Assembly (NCBI GenBank): GCA_964187785.1 | Contig: OZ076415.1 | Location: forward strand, 54,126,001-54,190,000 | Source of the DNA: Amphiscolops sp. MND2022 | Taxonomy: Eukaryota | DNA length: 64,000 bases | Direction: 5' to 3' | In this document: piece after piece, positions 1-19,350 of the stretch | How the letters are laid out: every line of letters begins with the position of its first letter | Position numbering within the stretch: position 1 is the first letter of the stretch | Notes under the pieces: generated by a model | Database searches by the model: none | What the model saw: the letters and a program-made list of their open reading frames with translations, nothing else | Told to the model about the DNA's origin: nothing | Made by a program: the position numbers and the translations under genes

Positions 1-3000
1 TGAATCGTTCAACGAGACCATTACTGTGAGGGCAGTACAATGGGCTATACTTCAGGGCAGCACCTTGATGAATGATAAAAGTTTTGAACTCCGCACTGGT
101 AAACGAAGAACGTTCATCACAACGAATTAACTCAGGTACCCCAAAACGAGCAAAATAATCTTTTAAAGATATAACTATTTGTTTCGCGTGCGTGTTATCA
201 AGCGCATAAACTTCAGGCCATCTCGAGTATTCATCAACAACAAGAAGCAAATACTTGAAGTTACTCGGCGCATCGTTGTAAGGACCACTAATATCTATAT
301 TGATCGTTGTAAACTTTTCATCTGCTGTTATGATTTTCCCATGCGGAACATCTCGAACAACTTGTGCTTTATCGGTCTCACAACAAGCTGAACAACTTTT
401 AACCAGCTGTTCCAACATAGCTGAACACTTTGGCCACCAACAAAACTCCGCAACTGATGTTTGGAACGGACAATTCTAAAATGATCTTCATGAGCTAGTT
501 GGAGAGCTTTCGAATAAAGACTTTCAGGCATTACAATAGCTGCACCGCGACCTACACTGTATTTAGACCAACAATAAAGTTCATTCCGAACTGCAAAGTA
601 AGGTAGTAATTTTTCATCCATAACGTTTCGTCTGGGCCAACCATTAATAATGAAACCGCGCACTTTGATCAAAACTTGATCCTGTTTGGAAGCATTGTCA
701 ACTTCATCAACAGTGAAAGCAGACAAGTTATCAAAAAGAGCATTTACAACATACGAATCATCATCAGTAAATGAACAATCAACTGGTAATCGTGAAAGCG
801 CATCAGCCACAGCATTACTTTTTCCAGGTTTGTGTACTACAGTAAAATCATAGCGTAGTAACCTGGCAGACCAACGTGCAAGTCTCAGTGGACGGACACC
901 GTCCCCAATTTCACCATTTATAAGTTGCAGTAAGAATTTATGGTCAGTCTTTAATGTGAAGTGTTTACCCCACAGGAATCTTTCGAATCTCTCGCAAGTA
1001 CAAATACAAGCTACTAGTTCCAATTCAGGAAAACTATATTTTTTTTCAAATTCTTGTAATGAACGAGAGAAAAATGAAACTGTTTTGTATTCCCCATTAT
1101 CTTGCAACTGTGATAATTCACCACCGATTCCAATTTTGGAAGCATCACATGTAACAATCGTTTCTGCTAGAGGATTATACATTGCCAAAGGTTTAGCACG
1201 AAGTAACATTTTTTGAAGGCATTTGAACTGTTCGGTAAGACCCTCTGTCCACTTGAAGGCAACATTTTTATGAAGTAGTTTATAGAAATCGGCAGCTTTT
1301 GAAGAATAATCACTCGGTAAAAATTTTTGATAGTGACTGAATAAACCTAGAGCAGAAGCTAAGGATTGTTTATCGTAAGGAACTTTCATTTCAGCGATTG
1401 AAGTCAAATTGTTCTCAAGAATAGCAAATTCGTTCAGACCCAGTTTAAAGCCTAGCCATTCAATGTTCGTTTTCTCAAACTCACATTTGTCAAAGTTAGC
1501 TACCAATCCATTGGATTGCAATCTATTCAATACAGCAATTAATCTTTCATCATGTTCTTCCTTTGTAGAACCATAAACTATGATGTCGTCAAGAAAACTG
1601 AAACAACCTTTTAAGTCAGCTAGGATTATATCCATCATTTTTTGAAACTTCGGAGGAACGTCCCGTAACCCAAATGGAGCTCTCAGAAATTTGTATTGTC
1701 CACAGGGTAAAATAAACCAAGCATACGTTGAGTTTTCGAATCGACTGGAAGTTGATGGTAAGCGTTAGATAAGTCTATTTTTGAATAAACTTTTGCATTA
1801 GTTATCGAATTTATAGTGGACTCAATGTTAGGTAAGGGGTAGGGATCTTTCTTTATCGCTTTGTTTACTTCTCGCAAGTCACAGCAAAGCCGAATTTTTC
1901 CATTTTTTCTCCAAGAATCAACATGAGGACTAGCCCAATCGATATCAGCATTGGTACAGGGTTCAAGAACACCCAATGAACAAAGTTTTTTAACTTCCTT
2001 CTCGACATGGTCTTTCATTGCAAAAGGAAGAGGACGAGCTTTCGAAATGACGGGAGTAATTGTTGCATCGATTGCTGAAGACAAAACAAAGTTCTTTGCA
2101 TGACCTAGAGTGTCGGAGTCAAACGATTTTTGAAATTTCTGCTTGAGGATACTTCCTGGACTTGTTTCTGGTATGCAAGTATGTACACGATTCAATTGTG
2201 TATCGTTTATCGATATTGCAAAATGCAGTTTATCTAGAATATCGAGGCCAATCAAAGAAATGCCATGAGCTACATAATAGTCTTGTCTGAATGACAAAGA
2301 ACCACTCATGATTTCGAAGTTAGAAATTCCATGAGCCTCAATAGCAGAACCACCATAACCAGTAATTTTTGAATGGTTTTTGATGCACTTTTTGTTTGGG
2401 AATAATTTGTCGAACGTATCTTTAGAAATAATTGATGCCTTGGCACCACTGTCAACAACAAATACAACATTTTTGTTGTCCAACTGTAAGGAATATTTGA
2501 AGAACTCAGAAAGAATCGAATTGAAAGGACTATTTACAGTAAGGGTAACGGGTGTAGAAGAATTTTCTTCCAGAGTGTTTGTGACAACAACATTTGAACT
2601 CGCACTACGGCACACTTTTGCAAAATGACCAGTTTTGTTGCAGTTTTTGCATTTCTTGTCCGCAGCCGGACAATCTTTACTGTTAGCGAAATGTAATTTG
2701 GATCCACAACGAAAACAAGAATGGATAATTTTAAAAGTAGATTTCAATTTTTGTTGATTGATTTTCGAATTGAACCGCTGTACAGTGTGAGTATTACTAT
2801 GAGCAGTGTCAGTGTAATTTGTATTTTTGAGTAAAACAGATGTAGCAATTCCCGCTTCGATTCGTGTAGCAATTTTTAGACATTCTTCCAGAGAAGGGTT
2901 ATCTTGAAGTAAGCGATCTCTTATGCGAATTTCTCTAACTCCTTTGATTAACTGATCTCGCAGAGATGTATCCAGAAACGCACCAAAATCGCATTTTTGA

Positions 3001-3370
3001 GCAAGTCGTCGTAAAGCAACAACAAATTCATCAATGCTTTCACCTGATTTTTGAATACGACACCCAAATGAATAACGCTCGGAAACTACGTTGACTTTAT
3101 CAGCAAAATGATTTTCAAGGCATTGTAAAACTTCTTCATAAGTATCATTAGCTATTTGCGTATCATCTCGTAAAGAATAATAAACGGTCTGACCTTCAAG
3201 TCCAATTAAATGGAGCAAAATAGCTTTTTTCTGTTACTAGCCAACTCTGCGTAGTTTGTAGCCGTCATGTAATTATTGAAGAGGCGAATCCAGTCCTTCC
3301 ATGGAACTCTTGGTTTCCCGGGATCAGGTAAAAAAGGTTGGGGCGCAGGTAGGTTGAAAGTTTCAGACAT
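1..3370 (-). pseudogene. Gag-Pol polyprotein, frameshifted at about 3225, 1710 and 400
   Basis: Starts MSETFNLPAPQPFLPDPG at 3370. Zinc knuckles CFRCGSKLH and CKNCNKTGHFAKVC; protease VVDSGAK; RT KIDLSNAYHQ...FGL...FLDD; RNase H TCDASKIGIG, LKTDHK, NAVADALSRL; integrase core IDISGPY...VVDEYSRWPE...SNGLVERF at 1-290. Confidence 0.9.
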
Positions 3371-3393
3371 TGGTTGCACTAGTTTTAGTTTAT

Positions 3394-3515
3394 CTCTGTC
3401 GCCATTTCATATTCTTGACTGCGGGAAAACCTTCGTTACTTATTCAGTCAATTACGAATCAAAATTATGTGATAATCAATCATGTATGAATCATTCATTC
3501 AGAATATATACCACA
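3394..3515 (-). repeat. Putative ~110-bp 5' LTR (3405-3515) plus primer-binding site TGGCGACAGAG (3394-3404)
   Basis: Minus strand begins TGTGG at 3515, exactly where homology with the duplicate block at 9251 starts. A TGG-initiated PBS precedes gag. The partner LTR is outside the window. Confidence 0.6.
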
Positions 3516-4387
3516 TTTCCATTGAATTGATTTATACGAAGATGATGCAGTTAAGTAGCGCTTTGAATACTGCCATTATACTGCATGGAATCATCAATCT
3601 TGTCTAGGTGCGATCTATTCAGATAATTATTTACACACTCAACCGCTCAGTTGTGGTCACAATAATTAAATTTTCGAAAACTTTGTTTTCACAGTAAATC
3701 TGTTTGCCCAAAACTTAGAAACATACTTGACGCTTTCCGTGCATTTCAGATTTTTTGCAGTGTTTCTTGCAACGTTGAGACATTGATTTGCAATATCTTT
3801 CCAGGGATCTGACGAGAAATGCATGGAACAGCATGAATCTTACAAGGAATGTCTCAGTCTGGAAGAAATGTCTGATCTGCATGAATCTGACAGGTTTGCT
3901 CTGGAATGTCATACACTAGCAAGATTGTTGCAGATAATGACTGATATGTTCGACTTCTGCATGCAACATTCTGTTGCAACATTGTTGCAACATTCTTGCA
4001 AAAATTGTATTGCAGTTTGACAAGGGTTGGGTCAGCACTAGCTTCCATCCACTTATTATCAACTTAGGTCCAATTACCGTTCTTGAACTTGTAGATCACC
4101 CCTTGGACTTGTGGATCAATCACCCCTGGCTCAGTGATAGTTGTTGCCTGAACCGAGTCTTTTTGAACCAACAGCTTTAATTCAAGCCAGGCATTTCTTG
4201 ATCACTTAGGTGCAAATCTTGATCACATATATCTCGAGTGTTTTCACCTTCCTTTTTCTCCATAATTTAGTTGATTAAGAACGTGTGGATGAGCCATCAA
4301 ACAACAATATATTTCAAAGTAACAATAGGTAATACTGTGTGAAAAGTTTTAATGATTTTTGACCGATGCGGTTGGCGAATGGTCTAG

Positions 4388-4612
4388 TTGGCAGAAAGCA
4401 TCTCTTGGATAAATCGAAGTGTGATTGAGGACCACTTGCTCGGGAGTAGAGAGGCCGCTGTTCGTTTGGCGGTGCCCCCTTCAAAGCTGTTGTTAATTAG
4501 CAGAAGGGTTCTCGAGACATTCAAGGTGGACTTGGACCAGTTTATGATCGGCTGCACCGAAAGCGGAAACTACGTGAGTTGTCATGACGTCTTCAACTGG
4601 AGCTTGCAATGC
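4388..4612 (+). CDS. DEG/ENaC channel extracellular exon ('exon 2'); 3' boundary uncertain
   Basis: Acceptor ctag|TTG in phase 0. Encodes LAESISWINR...FKVDLDQFMIGCTESGNYVSCHDVFNWS, resembling the DEG/ENaC 'DM(L/I)xSC.F....C...F' segment that lies between TM1 and the GxCYTFN motif. Confidence 0.6.
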
Positions 4613-4691
4613 AGGGCTGTGCTGTTCATGCTACTTTTTGTTGCCAAGATTGCTTCTTTTCTCAGAAAACGTTCACGTGCGTCCATGCATT

Positions 4692-5464
4692 CCCAGCGAT
4701 CGAAGACACGCTACGCTTGCCAAGATCATGATTAATCTTGCTACATCATGGTTAACCATGGTACCCTTGTCAAGATCATAGCTAATCATGATACATGGAA
4801 CGCTTGTCAAGATCATGGCAAGATAACCATGGTAAGACATGTGAGCTGTATAATTGTATAATTTATTCTTTTCATAAAAATTTCTTGCCGTCTCCAATTT
4901 CTGAATAAGCCGTTGTAATAACTTCGGACATAACCTTTATTTATCGAAAAAAGTTTTTTAAACTGAAAACGATACAACACTTCTCAATAATTTGCTCCAC
5001 CTATTGACTGAGTTTTGTTACTTGAGAGCACGGCATCTTTTCTACTATCGTAACCTATCTTACAACGCAAACTCCGAATCAAGTTATTGCAACTTGCGGG
5101 TTTGCGATATCGGTGTGAAAACCTTCTTTTCTAGCTATGATTTTTAAATCTTGCTAATACCTCACCTATTGAGGTAACGTGTTGAAATTAGTGAAGTTCG
5201 AGAATGCAATAGAAACCGGTGCAATAAAAATAAACATGATAAGAAAATAAGAGTTGCCAAAAAAACGGATTTGTTACCTTGGAATCCTTGTCAAGAATAT
5301 GGTTAATCTTGGCATCCTTGCCAACATCATGGTAAAACACGGTACGCTTGGCACGATCTTGCATAATCATGGTATTCTCGGGAAGGTCATTGTAAGATCT
5401 TGGCAAGGCTAGCTAGCGATTTACCATGGTTAATGGCAAGCGTACCATGTCTTCGATCGCTGGG
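4692..5464. mobile_element. MITE-like element with CCCAG termini and arms built from CATG/GATC palindromic motifs
   Basis: Left cccagcgatcgaagacacgctacgcttgcc is the near-perfect inverse of right ggcaagcgtaccatgtcttcgatcgctggg. Confidence 0.8.
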
Positions 5465-5759
5465 AGAATCAGAAATGAAAACAACTCGAGAGTATGTCAG
5501 CCATCTAATCAGAGTTGTTTTCATGAGAAATCATCACAATTCTTCACTCTTTTTTGATGTTTATACCGTGTTTGTTATTTTCCACCCAAATATAATTGGA
5601 GAGGTAAATCATAATCTGTGTTGCGTTTTTTTTTCCAAATTCTGCCAAATCTCTTCCCACTTTCGCCATCGACCTCACTTAGAGTTATTGACTATTTTAG
5701 TTACTTGACTGTTCTAGTTGCTTAGTAAAATCTAGTTACTTAGTAAAATCTAGTAACCA

Positions 5760-5820
5760 TGGCGCAGTTGGTAGTGCGTCTGCCTGGGAGACACGAGGTC
5801 GTGGGTTCGAACCCGCGCTG
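5760..5820 (+). repeat. tRNA-derived (SINE-head-like) sequence with Pol III A and B boxes
   Basis: A box TGGCGCAGTTGG and B box GGTTCGAACCC; no proper acceptor stem or anticodon stem, so not called a tRNA gene. Confidence 0.7.
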
Positions 5821-5928
5821 ATGCGTTACGTTTTTAGCTTAGTGGGGGTTTTGTTCTTATTATGACCCATGTCTGTCTTGTGCATCGTGCTACATTACAA
5901 CTAGTGAACGACAACGTTTTGAATTCGG

Positions 5929-6262
5929 CACTACAATACATATGCCGCCAAAGTGAACTTTATCATCCAGTGTAAAGTGTATTTTCCGTGAAACGAGAGC
6001 GAACCGTATTCTCGTCAAATAGTGCACAGTGTTCATCGCGGATTGTGATGCACGGTGTAATAAAAAATTTCGAATGTTTAACATATACCGTGATTGTGTA
6101 AAGCAGTCAATTATTGTATTCTCATCACTACGCGTAACGCCAAATCACACAGTGTAACGAGCAAAACACGTAACGCGTATCTGAAATAATAACGAGTTTG
6201 GATTGGCTGTTAATCGAACTAGCAAGAACTTGCTAGTTCGTTGCAGTATATGTATCGTAATG
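5929..6262. mobile_element. MITE, ~20-bp TIR (CATTACRATACATATGCCGC family), GG flanks
   Basis: Homologous to copies at 10761-11093 and 48857-49309; TIRs slightly decayed in this copy. Confidence 0.75.
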
Positions 6263-6559
6263 GGGTTTCTTGCACACATTACTGTGCACAGGCAAGCTAT
6301 TTTGCTGTTTTCGTGGAATCCGGGACTTAGGATACTTGAGGCATGTCATCAAGTATTTTGAGGTTTTGACATTACTAGCATTGTCGACTAATGAGTGTTG
6401 TTGTTCCATTGAGCAGGCAACTTGTCTCTTTTGACATTTTGTTCTGAGATTATAAATGCACTGTCTTTTTCCGTCATCATTTCAACCAGTTCTCACATTT
6501 TTACCCAAGTTGAACCGTTAACTTTTCCTTCCATTTTCATTTTTTATCTGAGAGGGACC

Positions 6560-6795
6560 ATGGAGAAGAAAAACATATTTTGGAAATCTTTGTACACAGT
6601 TGTTTGGGCTATTTGCACGGCCATCACGATTAAGTATTCATACGAGTTGATAAGAGATTACCAGGAGATGAATCCGATTTCACTGACAACTTACATGGAC
6701 ACACAAAATGTCGACAGACCCGGCTACGAAATAGTGAACAACGCATACCTGGATCCTCAAAAATTCTGAACTTTAACAGATCAACTGACGCTTCG
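6560..6795 (+). pseudogene. DEG/ENaC TM1 exon ('exon 1-prime') with a 1-bp frameshift at about 6760
   Basis: KNIFWKSLYTVVWAICTAITIKYSYELIRDY...RPGYEIVNN resembles TM1 plus the FPAVTICN-equivalent. Adding one A to cctcaaaaattc continues KILNFNRSTDAS to the donor tcg|GTCAGT (phase 0). Confidence 0.65.
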
Positions 6796-7678
6796 GTCAG
6801 TTATTCTTATATTTTATTATTCGATGGAAACCTAAGTAAACATATAACTGGTTGGAAACTAAAGACAATGTGAGCACTTTTGAAAATGATCTCGAAAACG
6901 TTTTTTTATGACGCAAGACTTATGAAAAACGAATGATAACTTCGTTTCTTTTTCAGAATGATAATCAAACTCGACAAAAACCCTTCGTGAATCAAACGTT
7001 GAAACGGATAACAATTCACAGCAGCACATCTGTGAGAATTTGTACTGTAATAGCAAAAATTAGACACACGGGACTGCTAAATATTTGCTGGATAAAATTG
7101 GGCAATGACTTGTTTTGAATTAATTTACAACATGTGCCACAGTCTGCAGACCTGAATCACTGAGGATACGCTGCTTAATCTTCTCACTTGATACATCGAG
7201 TATTCATTACTTGTGTAAATTTGTAGTGTAGGGGAGATAGTGTTGTGGCTAGAGTATTCGTCTTGTATTCCCCAGTCTAACGTCCATACATTTTCTGCAA
7301 AAATCTGTCAAATTTCACTTCTAAGATCTTGAAAGACAATGCATTATTCTTGCAGGTAACATTGCAAGAAATGTAGCTGGAAACTAATGACCGAATCTTG
7401 GGAGCAAACGAGTGTGAAGTATTTCATTTAAAAAATATTGCAGCGTCAGGAAAACAAATATACACATAAATACAGTTTTACAGTAAAATTAATTTCTGCC
7501 CACATTTACTGGGAAAGGAAAATCATAATCTGTGTTGCGTTTCGTTCCAAGTTGTGCCAAATTACCACTATCTCCATCCACTTCACTTCGTTGACTATTT
7601 CAGTTACTTGACTCTTTTAATTAATATTGGCCCAGTTGGTAGTTGACTATTTTCGTAACTTGACTATTTTAGTTACTA

Positions 7679-7740
7679 TGGCTCAGTTGATAGTGCATCC
7701 GCCCCTTCGACAGTAGTAAGTGGGTTCGAATCTCGCCTTC
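7679..7740 (+). repeat. Diverged tRNA-like/SINE-head copy
   Basis: TGGCTCAGTTGA...GGTTCGAATC; preceded by the same ttgactattttagttac-rich leader as the 5760 copy. Confidence 0.6.
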
Positions 7741-7875
7741 GCCAGACGTTTCTGAGAAGGTGGAAAATATCCCGGTGCTTAGCGGGCGTCCTGTATATAA
7801 TATAGTTTATCATATCTATCATATTGTATCTAATACACTTGTAGCAAGGATAATGTTAAAAACTCTCCAGTAAGT

Positions 7876-8725
7876 ACAGTGCTGTGATAAAGAAACTGAT
7901 CATAAGGATGTGATAATAAATTGGGACTCTCCATTTTCACGTCTAAAGCTTCCTAAATAAACAAAATGTCGAGGGTTTATTTGACACGGCCTCTCGTTGT
8001 TTGATTAATTAGATGCTGATAATCATTTAGGTTACAAAATGCCTCAAACCACAGTAGTGAACCACTGGACAAAAAATTCCTAGAACAACCATAAATTATA
8101 CAACGATTCCAAAAGGACCCAACAACCCTGGAAAATTGACCAAAAAAAAACCGGAAGACCACAAATATTCGACAAACTTGAGCAGAAATAATTTATCAGA
8201 ATGTGTTTGGCTCTGCCAAAATTGAGTTCTAGTCCTTTTTTGGCGTCCCTAGAGTTATCAAAAAAGTTTCTACAAGTTACGTCCGGACGCTGATATCGTC
8301 GGATGAACTTTTATAGCAAGGCAATGCTCAAGCTCATAAATCTTCGGAAACTTCTACATGGTTTTTCGAAAACGGTGTTGGCGTTCTTGAAAACTGGCTC
8401 CCAAACTCTCACCAAGATCTCAATATTATCAAAAATTTGTGGTCTATTCGAAAAGGCAGAGTTGCGAAGAAACACCCCTAAATTTTGGAGGAGTCTTGCC
8501 TCTGAAGAAATTTACGCAATTCCTGACGAATATGTACAAACACTTTTCACATCGATAAAAAACTTGTTGATACTTACAAAATATAACCCTTGAGGTTTCA
8601 CCCGAAATTGAAAGCTTCAATGTTTTACCTAGTTTGATAATATCATTTCAATATTATCATGAGGTTATTCAATTTATTATTTTTAATTCAGTCCCATTTC
8701 TTTTCCACAGCCATATGTTCTATTT
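7876..8725 (+). mobile_element. Tc1/mariner transposon remnant, internally deleted
   Basis: KKTGRPQIF (HTH region) at ~8150 and QGNAQAHKSSETSTWF...VLENWLPNSHQDLNIIKNLW at ~8320-8440, matching Tc1 QDNAPxH...WPPxSPDLNPIENLW. Degenerate TIRs; ends approximate. Confidence 0.8.
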
Positions 8726-10591
8726 CTCAATCACATTACAGTAGTTCTTTTGTTTTTCCCGGTTGCACTGGCCTTCATGTAATCTCAGTGTACTGGAGTA
8801 CTTCCTTTATCATGTGCCTCGCAAACTAGGACGCAGCTAACCATCGTGGCAAAAATGCAGCTCCATTAGTCCTAGTTCTAAAATATTAAATTCATTCCAT
8901 TATGATGAGCTCAAAAATTCCATAGTCTAGAGTCCAAATGAACATCCTTAAAATATTTGCAATACCACGCAGACTTGTTGTGGACGCCAAGAAGGGAATG
9001 ATCGAACATTAATTTATGAAGTTGGATGGCAGAACGTTAGAAAAACCCCCACTACGGAAATAAATCCAAACAGCCTCTAAAACAGTCTGAAATAGATTGT
9101 TTTGCTTGTGTCGGATCAATGAAATTCAATTTGCGCGAGAGCGTCGAACTTGCGATGTTTCAAGTTCCTCGTTTGCAATCATTAGGGCGATTTTGTGGTT
9201 TTGAAACACGAAGCCTATTATAACCAATGTAAATTGAGGAAAACTAATGTATTTCCATTGAATTGATTTATAAGAAGATGATGCAGTTAAGTAGCGCTTT
9301 GAATACTGCCATTATACTACATGGAATCATCAATCTTGTCTAGGTGCAAATTATTCAAATAATTATTTACACACTCAAGCGCTCAGTTGTGGTCACAATA
9401 TTTAAATTTTTGAAAATTTTGTTTTCACAGTAAATCTGTTTGCTCAAAACTTAGAAACGATCTTGACGCTTTCCGTGCATTCCAGATTTTTTGCAGTATT
9501 TCTAGCCGATTTGCAATATCTTTCCAGGGATCTGACGAGAAATGCATGGAACAGCATTAATCTTACAAGGAATGTCTCAGTCTGGAAGAAATGTCTGATC
9601 TGCATGAATCTGACATGTTTGCTCTGGAATGTCTTGCTCATACACTAGCAAGATTGTTGCAGATAATGACTGATATGTTCGACTTCTGCATGCAACATTC
9701 TGTTGCAACATTGTTGCAACATTCTTGCAAACATTTTATTGCAGTTTGACAAGGGTTGGGTCAGCACTAGCTTCCATCCCCTTATTATCAACTTAGGTCC
9801 AATTACCGTTCTTGAACTTGTAGATCACCCCTTGGACTTGTGGATCAATCACCCCTGGCTCAGTGATAGTTGTTGCCTGAACCGAGTCACTTTGAAACAA
9901 CAGCTTTAATTCAAGCCAGGCATTTCTTGATCACTTAGGTGCAAATCTTGATCACATATATCTCGAGTGTTTTCACCTTCCTTTTTCTCCATAATTTAGT
10001 TAAGTTTAGTTTTCTCCACAAATTAGTGAAGTTCGAGAATGCAATAGAAACCGATGCAATAAAAATAAACATAATAAGAAAATAAGAGTTGCCAAAAAAC
10101 GGATTTGTTACCTTGGAATCCTTGTCAAGAATATGGTTAATCTTGGCATCCTTGCCAACATCATGGTAAAACACGGTACGCTTGGCACGATCTTGCATAA
10201 TCATGGTATTCTCGGGAAGGTCATTGTAAGATCTTGGCAAGGCTAGCTAGCGATTTACCATGGTTAATGGCAAGCGTACCATGTCTTCGATCGCTGGGAG
10301 AATGAGAAATGAAAACAAATCGAGAGTATGTCAGCCATCTAATCAGAGTTGTTTTCATGAGAAATCATCACAATTCTTCACTCTTTTTTGATGTTTATAC
10401 CGTGTTTGTTATTTTCCACCCAAATATAATTGGAGAGGTAAATCATAATCTGTGTTGCGTTTTTTTCCAAATTCTGCCAAATCTCTTCCCACTTTCGCCA
10501 TCGACCTCACTTAGAGTTATTGACTATTTTAGTTACTTGACTGTTCTAGTTGCTTAGTAAAATCTAGTTACTTAGTAAAATCTAGTAACCA

Positions 10592-10652
10592 TGGCGCAGT
10601 TGGTAGTGCGTCTGCCTGGGAGACACGAGGTCGTGGGTTCGAACCCGCGCTG
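10592..10652 (+). repeat. tRNA-like/SINE-head copy within the duplication
   Basis: Same sequence as 5760-5820. Confidence 0.7.
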
Positions 10653-10760
10653 ATGCGTTACGTTTTTAGCTTAGTGGGGGTTTTGTTCTTATTATGACCC
10701 ATGTCTGTCTTGTGCATCGTGCTACATTACAACTAGTAAACGACAACGTTTTGAATTCGG

Positions 10761-11093
10761 CATTACAATACATATGCCGCCAAAGTGAACTTTATCATCC
10801 AGTGTAAAGTGTATTTTCCGTGAAACGAGAGCGAACCGTATTCTCGTCAAATAGTGCACAGTGTTCATCGCGGATTGTGATGCACGGTGTAATAAAAAAT
10901 TGGAATGTTTAAAATACACCGTGATTGTGTAAAGCAGTCAATTATTGTATTCTCATCACTACGCGTAACGCCAAATCACACAGTGTAACGAGCAAAACAC
11001 GTAACGCGTATCTGAAATAATAACGAGTTTGTATTGGCTGTTAATCGAACTAGCAAGAACTTGCTAGTTCGTTGCGGCATATGTATCGTAATG
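10761..11093. mobile_element. MITE, 20-bp TIR cattacaatacatatgccgc / gcggcatatgtatcgtaatg, 2-bp TSD GG
   Basis: TIR with one mismatch; gg flanks on both sides; subterminal hairpin cgaactagcaagaacttgctagttcg. Confidence 0.85.
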
Positions 11094-11112
11094 GGGTTTC
11101 TTGCATACATTA

Positions 11113-12135
11113 CAGTGCACAGGCAAGCTATTTTGCTGTTTTCGTGGAATCCGGGACACGAAAACTGAGAAAAGTCGTGGAATCCAGGACAAAATTTCTC
11201 TTTGATGTTAAGCGTGTCTTGGATTCCACGACAGTGCTTGTCCTGGATTCCACGCCAATACTACTGCCATAATGACACGTTTGCCGCTGCTCTCTGATTG
11301 GTCCGCTGATTTTGACTAATCATTTTAAATTAATTCAATTTTATATCAAAGGAAACTGTTTCGATCGACACGAAAAATCCAAGAAGTACGAATAGAGATA
11401 CTCGTGACTGGTACCAAAAATGAAGCATGTCATTTAAAAATGGCAGATTGTGATGATCTGGCAGTTTGTTCAAAACTGGTACTTAACTGAAAAATACGAA
11501 TATTTGTGTAGTATAATCTTCATTTTGCATGATCATTATTAGAAAGGCAGAAGAACTTGAATTAAATCAATCTTATATCAAAGGAAATTGTTTTGATTGA
11601 CACGAAAAGTCCCAAAGTACGAATAGAGATACTCATGACTGGTACCAAAACTAAAGCATGTCATCAAATAATGGCAGATTGTGATGATCTTGCAGTTTGT
11701 TCAAAACTGGTACTGAACCGAAAAATCTAAAAATTTTGCGTGATATTGGTGTGATTGTCTGAATCATTTTGAACTAATATACGAAAAGTAGTGCATAATA
11801 TTATGTTTGTTCTGTCTTCCAATTGAACTTAATTCAAGAAGAGATGCCGCGTATCGCGTCAAGCATAAAGTCGTGGAATCCAGGAAATTTATGATTTCTG
11901 CAATCTGATTGGTTCATTTTGCAAAACTTACGTTTTTGTGGAATCTGGGACACCGCTGCATGCCGACAGTTCGTACAGCTAAGCATTTGTTACTGGAATC
12001 CACGACTAAATCCGTGGAATCCGGGACAAATGACGTAATTTGCCAATTTTGCACGGTTAAAGGTATGGTCGTGGAATCCGAGATATTGAAAGCACTATGT
12101 TGCGCTTTGAGCAAATAAGGCTTGCCTGTGCACTC
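11113..12135. mobile_element. Non-autonomous Tc1/mariner-type element (TA TSD, TIR cagtgcacaggcaagc)
   Basis: ta|cagtgcacaggcaagc ... gcttgcctgtgcactc|ta. Multiple GTGGAATCC subterminal motifs in both orientations; internal duplication with ~235-bp period (about 11335 and 11570). Confidence 0.85.
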
Positions 12136-12774
12136 TAATGTATCCCAATTCAGGAAACTCGTTCGCAAGTTTTCATTTTTACCAAATAGATTCAACATTC
12201 AATAACTAAAAAACTATAGGAAGTATTTTTCTGGAACAAAATATCAATCGAAAATCAAGATGTTACTTTTGACTCAGCTGTTTCTTCCACAAGCCGTGAC
12301 CTTTTTGGCTGTGTAAAAAGGGAGGGAGGTTGTGTCTTCCCAGTGTTCGAAACCATGGTATCCTTGCCAAGATCCATTGGCAAATTACTTGGTAGCCTTG
12401 CCAAGATCTGCCAAGATCAGCCATGATCTTGCCATGATCTTGGCAAGGATGCCATGGCCATGCAAGATCGTGCAAAGGCAAACCATGATCTTGGCAAGGA
12501 TGCCATGATTAACCATGTTCTTGCCAAGGGTTCCATGGTTTCGAAGGGTTCCAACGTTTTTCCCGGTTTGCGTTTCGATGATTTTCCTTAGTCACTATTC
12601 CTGACGCTCGCCGCTTAAGACGTTATTCCCGTTTTGCATTTAGATATTATTCCTTAGTTGTTAATTCCCGGTCCCCATGGTATTCTCGGCTTCCACACAT
12701 TCATAGACAGGCCTTCCAACTAGGGACACGGTCAATAACTAAAAATGGTTTATTCGAATTTTTGACTTGATATC

Positions 12775-15700
12775 TGTGTTGATTCTCATGATTTTTAAAC
12801 AAAATTTCGATCAACGGACCTACCTAAAGAAGATGTGGACGAATCACGACACTCGACCAATCAGAGAAGGCCAGCAAATGATAAGAAATTCGTAACCAGG
12901 CGACCGAGACACATAAGTGAACACAGAGACAATAAAACCTCTAAAATTAGGCTAATCGCTCGCCAACCAAAATCATCACATGGTGACAGGAGTCTTTATC
13001 TCTCCAACTCCAGAATAACCCATTCACCGGTGAATTGGAAATATTGCACACTTCAACTCGACCTCTCTATCTCTAAATATAAATGACAAAACTGAATCAC
13101 ACAAAATATCTGCTCAACTGTCAGATTAAATAAAATCCTGCAATATTTCAATTTTTACTCTCAAAACACGTACACTTGAACCTCATAAACTCTCGATGTC
13201 CTTTCAAATGGCAGCAATACAACCATTTGTTATCCTACAGTCTTTTAAAGGCACAGAAACTGAAAACATCGAAGAATTCTTCAGACAGTTGACTAGCTGT
13301 ATCCAAGCGCCAGCAATTCCAGACGCAAATCCACATACCTACCTACATACACCTTTGAAAGGTGGCGAACTAGCTTTTTTCGATCAACTTCTTCAAACTA
13401 GAGTTCCAAGCACGAAATCGACAATACTCTGAATAAAGTGTACAAGACTTTCCAACAGAATTTCAGAGACTGGCACTTGAAGCATACCCTGACATACAAG
13501 CCGTTGCTACCGCTGGTGGACGTCCTGCAAAATTAGCAGAAAACCGCCGTGCGAATGAAAGAACACGATGAGTAAAACAAAATTTCATCAAACGCATGCC
13601 AAAAAAGATAAGACGCTTTCTGCTAACTCAACCAGACGACTCAGCGGTAGACGAATTTTGCGCGAAAGCAGCAAGCCGTATGATCGTAGACAGGCTTTAC
13701 CAGGAAGAAGACGACTGCGCCTTTAACGAACTCAGAGGCACATCCTCCAAGGACTTCGCAGGCATAGAAGAATTAGCGAAAGCCCAAACAAAATTCGAGG
13801 CAGACACTGAGCAAATCCCAGGTGAACTTAAAGAATTGAGCAAGAACCTCACGTCAGCCTCCTTGAACGAAATGGAAAACAGACAACCATAACAACACGG
13901 GCCAAAACACGTCCAACAACACAGGAAACAATCCAGGGAACTATAGAAGTAACTACAGAGGAAATAACCGTGGAAAGTACCGTGGTAATTCTGGTAATTC
14001 TCAAGGGAATTACAGAGGCAATAACCCTCGATACCAAAACCCCATACAAAAAAATGGACAAAAATGGCGTGTGGGACAAAGCCTTTGGAACAATCAATAT
14101 CAGCCATTTCTTTGGTCCAATCTGGTCGTGTACATTGTAATATTTGCAACAAATTCTGGGTTCGAGAACAATATCGTGGACCACCTGCGTTGCCCTACTA
14201 ACAGGTGAATGCACAGACGTATGCACCCCTGCCAGAGGTCAACAATCTGTACACGCTACCACCTCTGCCGCCACAACAACGTTGGCCTTCAACTAATGAC
14301 GCCAACTACTACTATACGGCAGACAATTTCACGAGTCAACAAAAAACTAGGTGAGGGATACCGAACCCCTTCTATTTCTCTTTTTTCTTCTACTTATAAA
14401 TACTCTCTATTAGTAAAGCCTCGCACTTCACTTTTTTCCATTTTAATTAACTTTTCATTGTCCGTTAAAACCCTCATAGCACTGGTGCTGTTTCTAGTGC
14501 TATGCCCCTTCAATTTCTAAAAAAACTCAAAACGACTTGTCCTCATCCCACGTCTACTATAACCTTACTAGTACTACCGTAAGAGTCGCTAGTGGTACTG
14601 CAATTTCCACTTGTGGAGATTTTACAGCTACCTTTGAAACGGCGAACTAATCTTTTCCTGAACCTTACAGTACACGAATTCGTTTGAAACCAGCTCTATC
14701 TGCCGATGAGTGCGATTACAAAGACATCGAAAATGACCCTAAACTCTTTAAAAAACTCACCTCTTGTCGCGTTCAGTTATCGCTCAAAACTTGGGCTCCT
14801 AGGCCCCGAAAAATCCTTACACTGAGCCACATTAAACCACACCCACCGTCACCCACGCTTAAGGTTTTCTCGGTTAAAGCTTTTTTCACCCCTTTTGGGA
14901 CACCATTTTTTACATGCATAACTTTTACTTTTTTTATCTGGTGCTTTGTTCTCTCTTGAGATCTTTGTTCGCTTGTGAACTTCATGTAAATACCTCCACT
15001 GACTCAACTTGAGACCTCTGGTACGCCCATCTTTGTTGACTTCCTGTCATGATAAGTTCTACTTTTCAACACCGTCGCTCTAAGCATATTTACCCCGTTT
15101 TAACATTTCTTTCTCTTGCCCCTTCTAATGCTGTGTCAATCTTTGATTTCCATCAGGCAAAACCCACTTTTGTTGCTTCATAATTCAGCCTCCATGAGCC
15201 CCCTTGTCTGCACACTCGTGTCAACTTCCTCCTTCCTCTTGCCAAAATTTCTTGTTTATACTGCTTGTTCATGGTACACTCCTTTTTTACTCATACATAA
15301 CCATATTTACCGCCGTTTTTTCATGGCACACCTCCTTCTCTTCTCTTTGCCCCCTTTTCGCTCCCTCTTTCTCTTCAATTCATGCTCCACATTTACGCAC
15401 ACCTTTGTTTTATTTTATCTCCTCCTTCATCTTTCTTTTCTCCGGGTTCTTGTGTGCGTTCTTCCTTTTGTTTTGTATGCATGCTTACTCGCCACTTCTG
15501 CTTCTGTGTTGATTTGCAGACTGGTCCGGCTCTGCTTTCTTCCATCTAGACCTGGATTCGCCCTTCTTCTGCGGGTAGAGTCATAATTCTCATGATTCTA
15601 TAAAAAATTTCGATTTCGGTCAACGGACCTACCAAAAGAACATGTGAACGAATCACAACACTCGACCAATCAGAGAAGGCCAGCAATTGATAAGAATTTC

Positions 15701-15968
15701 ATAACCAAAAGAACGATACACAGAAGTGAACAGAGAGACAATAAAACCAGTTGTTGAGTACTTGTGCTCTTAAATTACTCTAATAACGCTATTCTCAATA
15801 CTTCATCTTAACCTCTTGCAAACACTTGAGGTTTAAATCCACTTATAATATATCTTTGCTCTCTTTCTTTTCAATTTGAAGTAACACAGTTGAGACCTAA
15901 GAACGCATCTTAGAAATTGAACCAAGATCTAAAATGAAGCTAACCGCTGGCCAACCAAGATAATCACA
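12775..15968 (+). mobile_element. Non-autonomous gag-only LTR retroelement, TSD ATATC
   Basis: TG...CA ends. 5' LTR 12775-12980 followed by PBS-like TGGTGACAGGAG; 3' LTR ~15581-15968. ATATC at 12770-12774 and 15969-15973. Gag-like remnants (FKGTETENIEEFFRQL...LKGGELAFFDQL); no RT recognised. Confidence 0.85.
15752..15886. mobile_element. 135-bp solo LTR inserted in the 3' LTR, TSD CAGT
   Basis: cagt|TGTTGAG...GTAACA|cagt; homology to the 5' LTR of the host element resumes after it. Confidence 0.75.
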
Positions 15969-16412
15969 ATATCCTTGGTAAGAATCATGACAAACCATGG
16001 TTATCTTGTCAAGAACTTGCCAGGATCTTGCCATGATCTTGCCATGATCTTGACAAGCGTTCCATGTATCATGATTTGCTATGATTTTGACAAGGGTACC
16101 ATGGTTAACCATGATTAAGCAAGATTAACCATGATCATGGCAGGCGTTCTTGGCTTCGAACACTGGGTTGTAGTAGAGCCAGCGATAAAAGGTATTTTGC
16201 ATTCGAAATATGGTCTCTTACATCAAAATATGAGAATAACGGTAAAATCAAATTGCCCTCATTTTCCGAAGCATTCAGGTTGAATATTTTTGTTCGGTGT
16301 GTCGTCATTTTTCCTCAAGGATTCAATCAATATATTTGGCCAATTTTCCTCATAATTTGCCTAAACACTTTCGTGCATAAACCTCACGGCGCCTGCTTCG
16401 ATTGGGCTACAG

Positions 16413-16626
16413 TGGTGGCTGTTTCAAAAGTGCCAATAGAGCTGTTCCTCATTGTGGAACATTCTTCTCCCATTCGGCCTACCTGTACTTTGACCCCGAC
16501 CTGCACATGGGCAAGTACACTTCCTCTATAGGGGCCAGCGTCACCATCAATGGTGCCATCCAGGTCATCAGAGTGAACCCCAACGAACTGGTAGAAGTAG
16601 CTACAGAGTCCGTCAAAATATCTCAG
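16413..16626 (+). CDS. DEG/ENaC exon 3 (5' boundary uncertain)
   Basis: GGCFKSAN...YLYFDPDLHMGKYTSSIGASVTING...VNPNELVEVATESVKISQ matches the GxCYTFN / G-V-IH / V-PG pattern of the palm domain. Confidence 0.7.
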
Positions 16627-17064
16627 GCAGGGTTGTTACTGCAAACATGTCACCATTGCTCACCATTGCCGAGTTTTACGGGAAAATATTCAAGAAAATT
16701 CATTGTTTCCACTTTTTCGGCAACAAATTCGAACTGGGTATGTTTGCATCCATTTCAGTTTCATTCATACCAGATCCGTTCAGTTGATATTCCATTCGCA
16801 CCCTATTGGTTTTACCTTCTAGTCGGATCTATTATGAGGCCAAGTGATAGTAGAAATAACAGCTGCGTTTTTACCGTTTCTGGACATGAAATAAGAACCT
16901 CGGACTGAACCTGAACCCATCGAAAGAAATTTGAATCATTGCCCTTGCTTATTTCAGAGTAAATTTTCGAGAAATGGTATGGCATCAGAAAAAAGTTCAC
17001 TTTTTTCAAGATAATTTCAGAATCACTTCAAATTTCCTATTTTTAAATAACCACCCTTGTCCAG

Positions 17065-17324
17065 GAAGAGTCCCTACCTAAGCTGAGATGCACCAACAAA
17101 AAGGGTCCCCAGCCACACCATTTCACGGGCAAAACTTTCGAGATTCCTTACAGCCCCCAGAGTTGCACGGAGTTGTGCGTGGCCGAGTTCAGCTACACAA
17201 GATGCAACTGCTCTTCTGTGATTGGCTGGAACATCACCAACTCTGAGTGTCTAGAATTGGAAAGAAATCGCCAATGTCTGCATAACCTGTTCAATCGGAG
17301 ATTCGTTGAACCCGACAGCAAAGA
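17065..17324 (+). CDS. DEG/ENaC exon 4 (Cys-rich thumb domain)
   Basis: Acceptor ttgtccag|; encodes YSPQSCTELCVAEFSYTRCNC...C...C; donor GTATGT in phase 2. Confidence 0.85.
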
Positions 17325-17826
17325 GTATGTACAAGTTTTAGTTCACAGTTCGTATAGAAGGTTCTTATTCAAAAAAATGAACTAATATCTGAAAAAGATG
17401 GACGCGGTGTACCTGGTAAGACATCGTTAGAATGTTTTTGTATCTCATGCTTTCAGCAATGCGCTCCGCCAACAGCGGTATCATGACCTGATGTGCTTTT
17501 AATCTGAAGTGAAAAATTCAACGGCTTTCTTATGCAATGTACTAGGAAATATAGTCTTTTTTCAAAGGAAAATGCTTATGCAAAGGAAAATGTTCAACTT
17601 CGTTTGTGAAGTTAAAATGGAACGTTTGAAAATGGCTGATGTTTTCATATCACCTTGAGATTTTGATACGCATGGTCCTTTTTGAAGCAAAAAAGAGAAA
17701 ATGAAAAAAAGAACAAAACGGCTATTGACAACGCTGAAACATTTCAAAATGGGAAATTTATGAGTCGCTTTTTAAGTTACATCATTGTCAAAGTGTTGTT
17801 ACTACAGTGCCATCTGTTGATTTCAG

Positions 17827-18055
17827 TGACCCAACTGCTTTCCAAGATTTCATCAAGCTGAGAGACTGTGGCACTCATTGTTTCGATAAGTGCGAGAACC
17901 ACTACTTTGCGTACACTGTGAGCAAAGCCTTTAACTACCCGACTCCCTTCTATCTCATCCAAGAGCTGAACAACATGCGGTCTAGTGGCATTAAGTCACC
18001 ACTTCTCACCCAACTGCTAGCCAAGATAGAACAGAGTGACAATAAGCGTTATCAG
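17827..18055 (+). CDS. DEG/ENaC exon 5
   Basis: Acceptor tttcag|T in phase 2, compatible with exon 4; encodes DCGTHCFDKCENHYFAYTVS...YP. Confidence 0.8.
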
Positions 18056-19059
18056 GCACGCAATTCCGTGAATTTTGAACAGTTCACTTCAAGCTTAAAT
18101 GTCAAAATATTTCTAGAGACATTCTTCGAGTTTTTGTAGTTCTTGTTCATCTGTCATTCAATTGCCATGACAAAGCGGAACAAGTCCCGTGTATGGCTGA
18201 AAAAGCACAAAGTTGTTTTCAAAAAGGCTGGAAATTTCTGTCGAAAAAGGCAGTTTCGAAAAAAACCTGAACGGGGGAATTTTCAGGCTAATAAAAGTTT
18301 CTTTAACTGAAAACAACATGAAAAGTTCAAAAAATAATTGCACAAGGAGCTTTTGGTTCCGTTTGCCTTGCAACCAGTATTTATGCATACTATGCATAAA
18401 TACTGGTTGCAAGGCAAACGGTACCAAAAGCTCCTTGTGCAATTATTTTATGAACTTTTCATGTTGTTTTCAGTTAAAGAAACTTTTATTATTCTTTCTT
18501 AAAAGAAACTTTTATTATAATAGTATTAGATGCGCTATAGACTTGCTCAAGGAATGTAAGTCGGATATAAAATTGAACCATTCGCAAATAAATGAACCAT
18601 TCATTGGGAGTCGGGAGAAAAATCTGAACACTGTAATATTTGTGTCAAAAATTCCCGAAAAAAAACCCTTATGCACAACCTACGGTAGAACAGGCCCAAC
18701 ATCTTGCCTTGGGGATTTGTCGTTGATGAAATTCGAAGAGACAACATCTATTAGTACAAAAAACACCGTGTGCAAAAATTATTTGAACAAAAACTATCAT
18801 AAAAACGTAGTTTAATTCACTAAAAAGGTTTGCAACTTAGAGAGTCATATTTATGTATGACAAAACTTTCTAGTAGCGTCCTGGACATTTACGCAATTGT
18901 CGGCTAAGATTAAAGAGGGGGGTGTGTTCTTCAGAAGGTGCAGCTTTGGGGCCCTGTGCTTCATGAGGGTATAGTGGAGGGCCTTTCGTTCACAAGATCC
19001 AAAATTTACAGTAAGTATTTGAAGTGTGAAATAAATGTTCCATGCCTGAGCGTGATCAG

Positions 19060-19350
19060 CTGGATACGGCGCGTGAAATTGTGAAGAGGGTGTCCAAGAT
19101 AGTGGTGTACTCGTCGCAATGCAGTTCGCAGATGGTGACAAGGAGTGAGAAAATGATCTCTATTCCCACTCTTCTAAGTAATTTGGGTGGTACTATGGGC
19201 ATGTGGCTCGGTCTCAGTGTACTCTCATTGGTGGGATTGCTCGAAAAGGTGTCTAACTGGGTGTGGGATCGCTATCACACAAAACAAGAACAAAAGCAAA
19301 AATTGTTTCATGACAATGGAAACAAAAACAGTGTAGATCCTAATCTATAA
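19060..19350 (+). CDS. DEG/ENaC terminal exon (TM2 and GxS filter); acceptor position tentative
   Basis: LLSNLGGTMGMWLGLSVLSLVGLLE is the canonical TM2 pattern with selectivity filter GLS; stop at 19348-19350. Confidence 0.9.
   Translation: MDTAREIVKRVSKIVVYSSQCSSQMVTRSEKMISIPTLLSNLGGTMGMWLGLSVLSLVGLLEKVSNWVWDRYHTKQEQKQKLFHDNGNKNSVDPNL

Follow-up and report, generated by a model that had tools for sequence, protein, structure and literature searches.

The stretch of DNA analysed, referred to here as the window, comprises 64,000 nucleotides of the Amphiscolops sp. MND2022 assembly (GCA_964187785.1, contig OZ076415.1; G000:C7:54126001-54190000), and negative window positions denote DNA to the left of it. 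Exons 2 to 6 of a gene of the DEG/ENaC channel family lie on its forward strand, and the first mapped coding exon (E1), which encodes the first transmembrane segment (TM1), lies to the left of the window. Within the gene a unit of 5736 bp, spanning the first two mapped coding exons (E1 and E2), intron 1 and the start of intron 2, is present as a direct tandem duplication. The left and right parts of each unit are designated U and X, respectively, and the order along the locus is U1, a Gypsy-like long terminal repeat (LTR) retrotransposon and X1, followed by U2 and X2 (table 1). The exons look out of order in the window because its edge cuts U1 off.

The right parts of the units were matched in direct orientation, X1 3515-4272 to X2 9251-10001 at 94.4% identity and X1 5185-6326 to X2 10020-11157 at 98.4% identity. 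X2 contains no counterpart of 4273-5184, a stretch of 912 bp that holds E2 and the left arm of a miniature inverted-repeat transposable element (MITE) of the CCCAG family. When 6327-9250 was searched against the entire assembly, one further full-length copy was returned, U1 (G000:C7:54122272-54125235, 95% identical), located 0.8-3.7 kb left of the window and past the LTR retrotransposon (-3728 to -765); U2 differs from U1 by 2.65% substitutions and 11 indel events. Homology of X1 begins at 3515, directly abutting the retrotransposon end, and the two units meet at a novel join, 6326/6327, where 50 bp of MITE stub, the severed beginning of a Tc1/mariner-like MITE, are followed by unique DNA with no shared repeat. 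Intron 2 on the duplicated haplotype is 11.8 kb long and encloses the decayed second unit. This layout agrees with the original prediction, which had placed exon 2 (4388) upstream of a TM1 exon (6560) with matching phase 0, had copy 1 keep exon 2 and the whole CCCAG MITE and end inside the Tc1-like element at 6326, and had copy 2 keep the whole Tc1-like element without exon 2 and the left MITE arm. It had also set the left edge of homology at the Gypsy LTR end, read the exon at 6560 as frameshifted and proposed a tandem duplication of the 5' part of the gene, which is borne out by two direct copies and one novel junction; the homologue of 6327-9250 with an intact TM1 exon that it expected past the Gypsy-like element is U1.

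The structure was compared with that in a second assembly (ENA ERZ25074608). Contig ctg182988_83x matches the reference at 100% identity between -6177 and 29350, thus covering U1, the retrotransposon, X1, U2 and X2, and contig ctg183726_80x represents the other haplotype, with one U-X unit, E1 and E2 intact and ordinary exon order. On the latter contig the CCCAG-family MITE is present, the Gypsy-like element is absent and the site of the Tc1-like element is empty. U1, U2 and the U of the other haplotype differ pairwise by 2.5-2.9%, and since three unit versions lie in two equally covered contigs, one haplotype holds two units. As the gene is plain and unduplicated on the other haplotype, the duplication represents a structural variant that segregates. 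Each of the three unit versions is represented by private letters in short-read contigs (Logan contigs from four DNA runs, all on one sample). Of 39 variable sites, 33 show in these contigs the letter shared by two of the three versions; agreement is with U1 at 23 sites, with U2 at 24 and with the other haplotype at 25. The contigs look mosaic because bubbles are popped in Logan contigs. The same contigs confirm the A6 allele and the exon 2 sequence. Depth ratios, taken from these bubble-popped contigs over a 6-kb stretch wholly inside the duplicated region, are compatible both with duplication and with haplotypes. No N letters occur within 44 kb around the locus. The locus holds a real but ordinary segregating intragenic duplication, found on one haplotype only, and not a new kind of gene.

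Exons were mapped by tblastn with three full-length relatives (P0006, P0016 and P0053). E1 of U1, E2 and E3-E6 fall in order along residues 77-510 of P0006, with the TM1 exon of U2 (E1') as an extra match. E1 of U1 has an AG acceptor 12 nt upstream of its ATG, an A6 run and a frame ending KILNFNRSTDAS like its homologues, and the TM1 exon donor (TCG/GT) and the exon 2 acceptor (TAG/TTG) have phase 0 in common. Exon 2 (4388-4614) is single copy genome-wide and is 100% identical in the other haplotype, its flanks included. Similarity to paralogues extends across the 12 nt before the E1 ATG (LTRT versus LTRN), which suggests that E1 is probably an internal exon. When E1 of U1, E2 of X1 and E3-E6 were joined at homology-consistent junctions, the frame stayed open for 489 codons after the start at the ATG, free of stops and frameshifts. 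The sole stop-free path takes E1 of the upstream unit and E2, bypasses the exon at 6560 and then uses exons 3-6, and it is the route that the transcript would follow according to the original prediction.

From end to end the 489-residue conceptual protein can be aligned with three members of the ASC family, P0006, P0016 and P0053 (Pfam ASC E 1e-33 to 1e-35); identity is 29-34% and 14 Cys columns are invariant. Two transmembrane segments flank a Cys-rich ectodomain, collinear with the family. In Pfam searches exon 6 alone matched ASC (PF00858) at 38.1 bits, above the cut-off, which is 23.6 (E 1.2e-9), and exon 4 scored 18.4 bits, which is under the cut-off (E 1.2e-3). A G/S-x-S motif in the second transmembrane segment (TM2) defines the DEG/ENaC selectivity filter; the motif here is G-L-S, within LGLSVLS of exon 6, and is the same in the three relatives. 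It is very likely that the locus is a single DEG/ENaC gene with a 5.7-kb direct tandem duplication closed by a non-homologous join, its coding sequence made up of upstream E1 and E2 and unique E3-E6.

Table 1. Features of the locus. Positions are those of the window; a point in the strand column denotes an element without assigned strand.
Feature	Position	Strand	Basis and remarks
E1, TM1 exon in U1, intact	-3509..-3261 (G000:C7:54122491-54122739)	+	Homology; AG acceptor, A6
Gypsy-like LTR retrotransposon, 4279 bp	-764..3514 (G000:C7:54125236-54129514); in-window 1..3514	-	Terminal repeats and Pfam domains
X1, right part of unit 1	3515..6326	+	Match to X2; partner U1 left of window
Exon 2 (E2)	4388..4614	+	Acceptor TAG/TTG, phase 0; tblastn collinearity
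CCCAG-family MITE	4692..5464	.	CCCAGCGATCGAAGAC inverted ends; complete in X1 and other haplotype
Tc1/mariner-like MITE, first 50 bp	6277..6326	+	Severed by duplication junction 6326/6327
U2, left part of unit 2	6327..9250	+	95% identity to U1
E1', dead duplicate TM1 exon in U2	6548..6795, ATG 6560	+	Acceptor lost, -1 frameshift
X2, right part of unit 2	9251..11157	+	Match to X1; continues into complete Tc1-like MITE
912-bp deletion scar in X2	10002..10019	+	18-bp filler resembling nearby sequence; X1 and other haplotype keep the deleted stretch
Tc1/mariner-like non-autonomous element, complete, 1033 bp	11108..12140	.	CAGTGCACAGG inverted ends, TA target duplication
Exon 3	16413..16626	+	Acceptor CAG/T, phase 2; homology-consistent donor CAG/GCAGGG (GC)
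Exon 4, part of Cys-rich ectodomain	17065..17324	+	Pfam ASC E 1.2e-3
Exon 5	17827..18067	+	Collinearity
Exon 6, TM2, G-L-S filter motif and stop codon	19060..19350	+	Pfam ASC E 1.2e-9

In the second unit the acceptor of E1' is changed from AG to AT at 6546-6547, two amino-acid changes are found in its first four codons, ahead of ATG 6560, and a run of A5 at 6759-6763 stands against A6 in the U1 copy and in the other haplotype, resulting in a -1 frameshift. With the other haplotype used for polarisation, E1' has seven own substitutions and one indel (267 bp) versus one in E1 (Fisher p 0.005). The substitutions in the body of E1', at 6634, 6649 and 6748, are all silent. Live E1 differs from the other haplotype by a single replacement, Thr/Arg at the second codon that follows the acceptor. 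Both E1 and E2 are intact in unit 1 and both counterparts are dead in unit 2, so the pattern is decay of the whole second exon set and not the reciprocal loss that had been proposed. The 'stop' of copy 1 at 6326, which had been counted as a loss, is simply the duplication breakpoint, and exons 3-6 were never duplicated; therefore the gene is not a channel assembled from two half-copies. What stands of the original prediction is the duplication, the upstream copy and the stop-free path, with reciprocal loss and half-copy assembly falling away.

Between haplotypes, the exons of the stop-free path differ by 4 substitutions in 1482 positions (0.27%; 1 replacement, 3 silent) with no indels, and the introns by 179 in 7851 (2.28%) with 23 indels (exons versus introns, Fisher p 2e-9). 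As judged from the two sequences, this contrast indicates purifying selection on the exons. From the columns invariant in six relatives the conceptual protein departs at 7 of 50, and the relatives at 0-12. The position of the E2/E3 junction was set by the spacing of 10 residues from an F to a C, which is constant in the three relatives and six paralogues and is found in ASIC1 too; the paralogues are intronless at this point, so the junction is set by spacing only. On balance the gene probably works, in which case a transcript would be made and the channel would be functional.

Several observations weigh against a working gene and a real duplication. At the conserved junction the reference, the other haplotype and the short-read contigs all have GG as the E2 donor (CAG/GGCTGT). 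The first GT donor in frame after E2 (4623/4624) lies 9 nt downstream, is weak and would add 3 residues, a perfect GTGAGT is found inside E2 at 4574, and the homology-consistent E3 donor is GC. Widespread non-canonical splicing was considered as the source of the GG and GC donors and rejected: the actin introns of the genome are plain GT-AG (7/7), so the genome is not lax on splice sites. The run search for the stretch returned no RNA, only the four DNA-type runs from one sample. Neither an HG motif nor an N-terminal exon was identified for the gene, and its nearest relatives are likewise without a clear HG; the only candidate for the N-terminal exon, some 5.5 kb farther to the left, is weak (E about 5). 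Both assemblies were probably built on the same long reads. Finally, the genealogy of the units is mosaic, so their history includes recombination or conversion.

The donors bear on the possibility of a genuine duplication in a gene that has recently died and is now a pseudogene on both haplotypes, its E2 donor having changed from GT to GG with no correct E2-E3 splice left. To the GG donor shared by both haplotypes, the otherwise GT-AG genome and the lack of RNA among the matching runs can be added the weak E1 donor (GTCAAT) and a Cys conserved in the relatives (CNN motif) that is replaced by Val. Such a death is nevertheless hard to reconcile with exon divergence between haplotypes about eightfold below that of introns, with three of the four exon changes silent, which would be unexpected if it preceded the haplotype split. 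The 489 codons without stop or frameshift, conserved columns retained as well as in the relatives and the in-frame GT 9 nt downstream also argue against it, and a pseudogene is considered possible but unlikely. It is improbable that the GG-AG intron (CAG/GG...CAG/T) would be functional and under selection, or that E1' would act as a decoy or poison exon giving the haplotypes different channel doses.

Downstream of the GC donor the E3 frame stays open for 93 codons (16627-16905), with an in-frame GTATGT at 16737/16738, 111 nt further. Two haplotype differences fall in 16709-16719, as an intron would predict. Whether the beginning of intron 3 is a decayed copy of the beginning of exon 4 was also considered, and the similarity was not significant (protein shuffles 520/2000, nucleotide shuffles 24/1000).

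For the single gene with an intragenic duplication, the following order of events is proposed. The Tc1/mariner-like MITE would first have inserted in intron 2. It is absent from the other haplotype, where a clean empty TA site is found, yet its first 50 bp end X1, so this insertion would predate the duplication and belong to the carrier lineage. The tandem duplication would have followed, with its right breakpoint 50 bp within this MITE. The downstream unit would then have lost the E1' acceptor, gained the -1 frameshift and lost E2' through the 912-bp deletion, and the Gypsy-like element would have entered intron 1 of the upstream unit; the insertion, the deletion, the acceptor loss and the frameshift would all be later than the duplication.

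In the right part of X the two units are sisters, with 7 and 5 private changes against 35 in the other haplotype. The three versions of U lie at equal distances from one another, with 33, 44 and 39 private changes, and in the left part of X the other haplotype, with 1 private change against 14 and 12 in the units, appears ancestral. Because the genealogy is mosaic, the variant may be old and may have exchanged with non-carrier chromosomes, or it may have been born by exchange between diverged haplotypes. In the latter case, unequal non-homologous exchange between haplotypes that had already diverged would have produced the duplication, the 2-3% difference between units would be inborn and the variant would be young. 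The star-like comparison of U and the near absence of private changes from the left X of the other haplotype are in its favour; the sister relationship in the right part of X, the presence in both units of a MITE missing from the other haplotype and the three separate disabling changes borne by unit 2 speak against it, and such an origin is rated as quite unlikely. That two haplotypes of a single-copy locus were stitched in tandem during assembly is very improbable: the unit difference (1.2-3.5%) is similar in magnitude to allelic divergence (2.3%), and false duplications of such kind are documented in assemblies (PMC9516828), but the locus is gap-free, the 6326/6327 join links a MITE stub to unique DNA without a shared repeat, the second assembly shows the same structure together with a separate other-haplotype contig whose unit is unlike both U1/X1 and U2/X2, and where a false haplotypic duplication would have only two read versions and an adjacent gap, the short-read contigs hold letters private to three versions and there is no N.

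In Drosophila populations, tandem duplications that segregate and contain gene parts have been catalogued (PMC4069613, PMC6380325). The duplication described here resembles them in being a direct tandem copy of a few kilobases with a non-homologous junction and partial gene capture, carried by some chromosomes only. Unlike those cases, the duplicate lies within the gene and comprises two coding exons, and the carrier haplotype is old enough for a 1-3% difference between units. The second copies of both exons are disabled, so the message can stay unchanged. With false haplotypic duplications (PMC9516828) the locus shares adjacent near-identical blocks, heterozygosity-like divergence and exons that seem gained or out of order; unlike them, it has no adjoining gap, three versions are present in the reads and the other haplotype has a contig of its own. 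Exon order that looks scrambled in a reference can thus have a simple cause, a haplotype-specific intragenic duplication in which the second exon set has decayed, and the locus provides a worked example of telling a structural variant from an assembly error using assemblies and short-read contigs alone. For annotation, the gene model must begin left of the window and omit the exon at 6560.

As a channel gene, it is like other DEG/ENaC members (PF00858 ASC; P0006, P0016 and P0053, and intronless paralogues) in its two transmembrane segments, Cys-rich ectodomain, G-x-S in TM2 and full-length collinearity. It is unlike these relatives in its 29-34% identity and in the lack of an identified HG motif or N-terminal exon, and it has at least five introns versus the single frames of the paralogues. 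The locus is one lineage-specific DEG/ENaC paralogue among many, and no new mechanism is indicated. Elsewhere in the genome, paralogues of the same subgroup each consist of one open frame, 486-543 codons long, and the best foreign relatives are also called as single open reading frames (ORFs); either the paralogues are retrocopies, or the window gene gained introns. In a related species, contig ctg88335 (ERZ26859043) holds orthologues of exons 5 and 6 (61% and 53% identity). E1-E4 were not found within about 27 kb upstream on this contig, where an LTR retrotransposon is located, and the locus there has either very long introns or is a gene fragment.

The Gypsy-like element sits between U1 and X1 and would thus occupy intron 1 of the putative working gene. 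Its terminal direct repeats of 110 bp are 100% identical and it is flanked by a target duplication of 5-6 bp, (A)TTTCC. Protease, reverse transcriptase, RNase H and integrase domains are encoded (Pfam RVP, RVT_1, RT_RNaseH_2 and rve), in three different, broken minus-strand frames. The insertion site is empty in U2/X2 as well as in the other haplotype. LTR-based dating of the insertion was dropped, since 110 identical bases give no power. On the other haplotype (ctg183726_80x) a large retroelement with an ORF of 1529 codons lies about 20 bp left of the position at which the duplicated unit starts in the reference, so two independent rearrangements have taken place within 20 bp.

The CCCAG-family MITE in X1 has CCCAGCGATCG inverted ends at 4691-4722 and 5434-5465. 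Cores resembling tRNA-derived short interspersed nuclear elements were considered at about 5760, 7660 and 10590 and rejected, as ARAGORN calls none. Intron 2 contains a further LTR-type element (12782-15748) with a gag-like, heavily broken interior and terminal repeats at 12782-12939 and 15586-15748 that are 86-89% similar; CCCAG-family MITEs are found on either side of it, at about 12340-12560 and 15960-16170. In intron 5 a near-perfect palindrome extends over 18289-18491, with arms of 101 nt, 98% complementarity and a loop of 1 nt. It is overlapped by an ORF call of 165 codons, and in the contig of the related species the orthologous exons also have ORFs of this length nearby; the palindrome region is therefore probably a mobile element.

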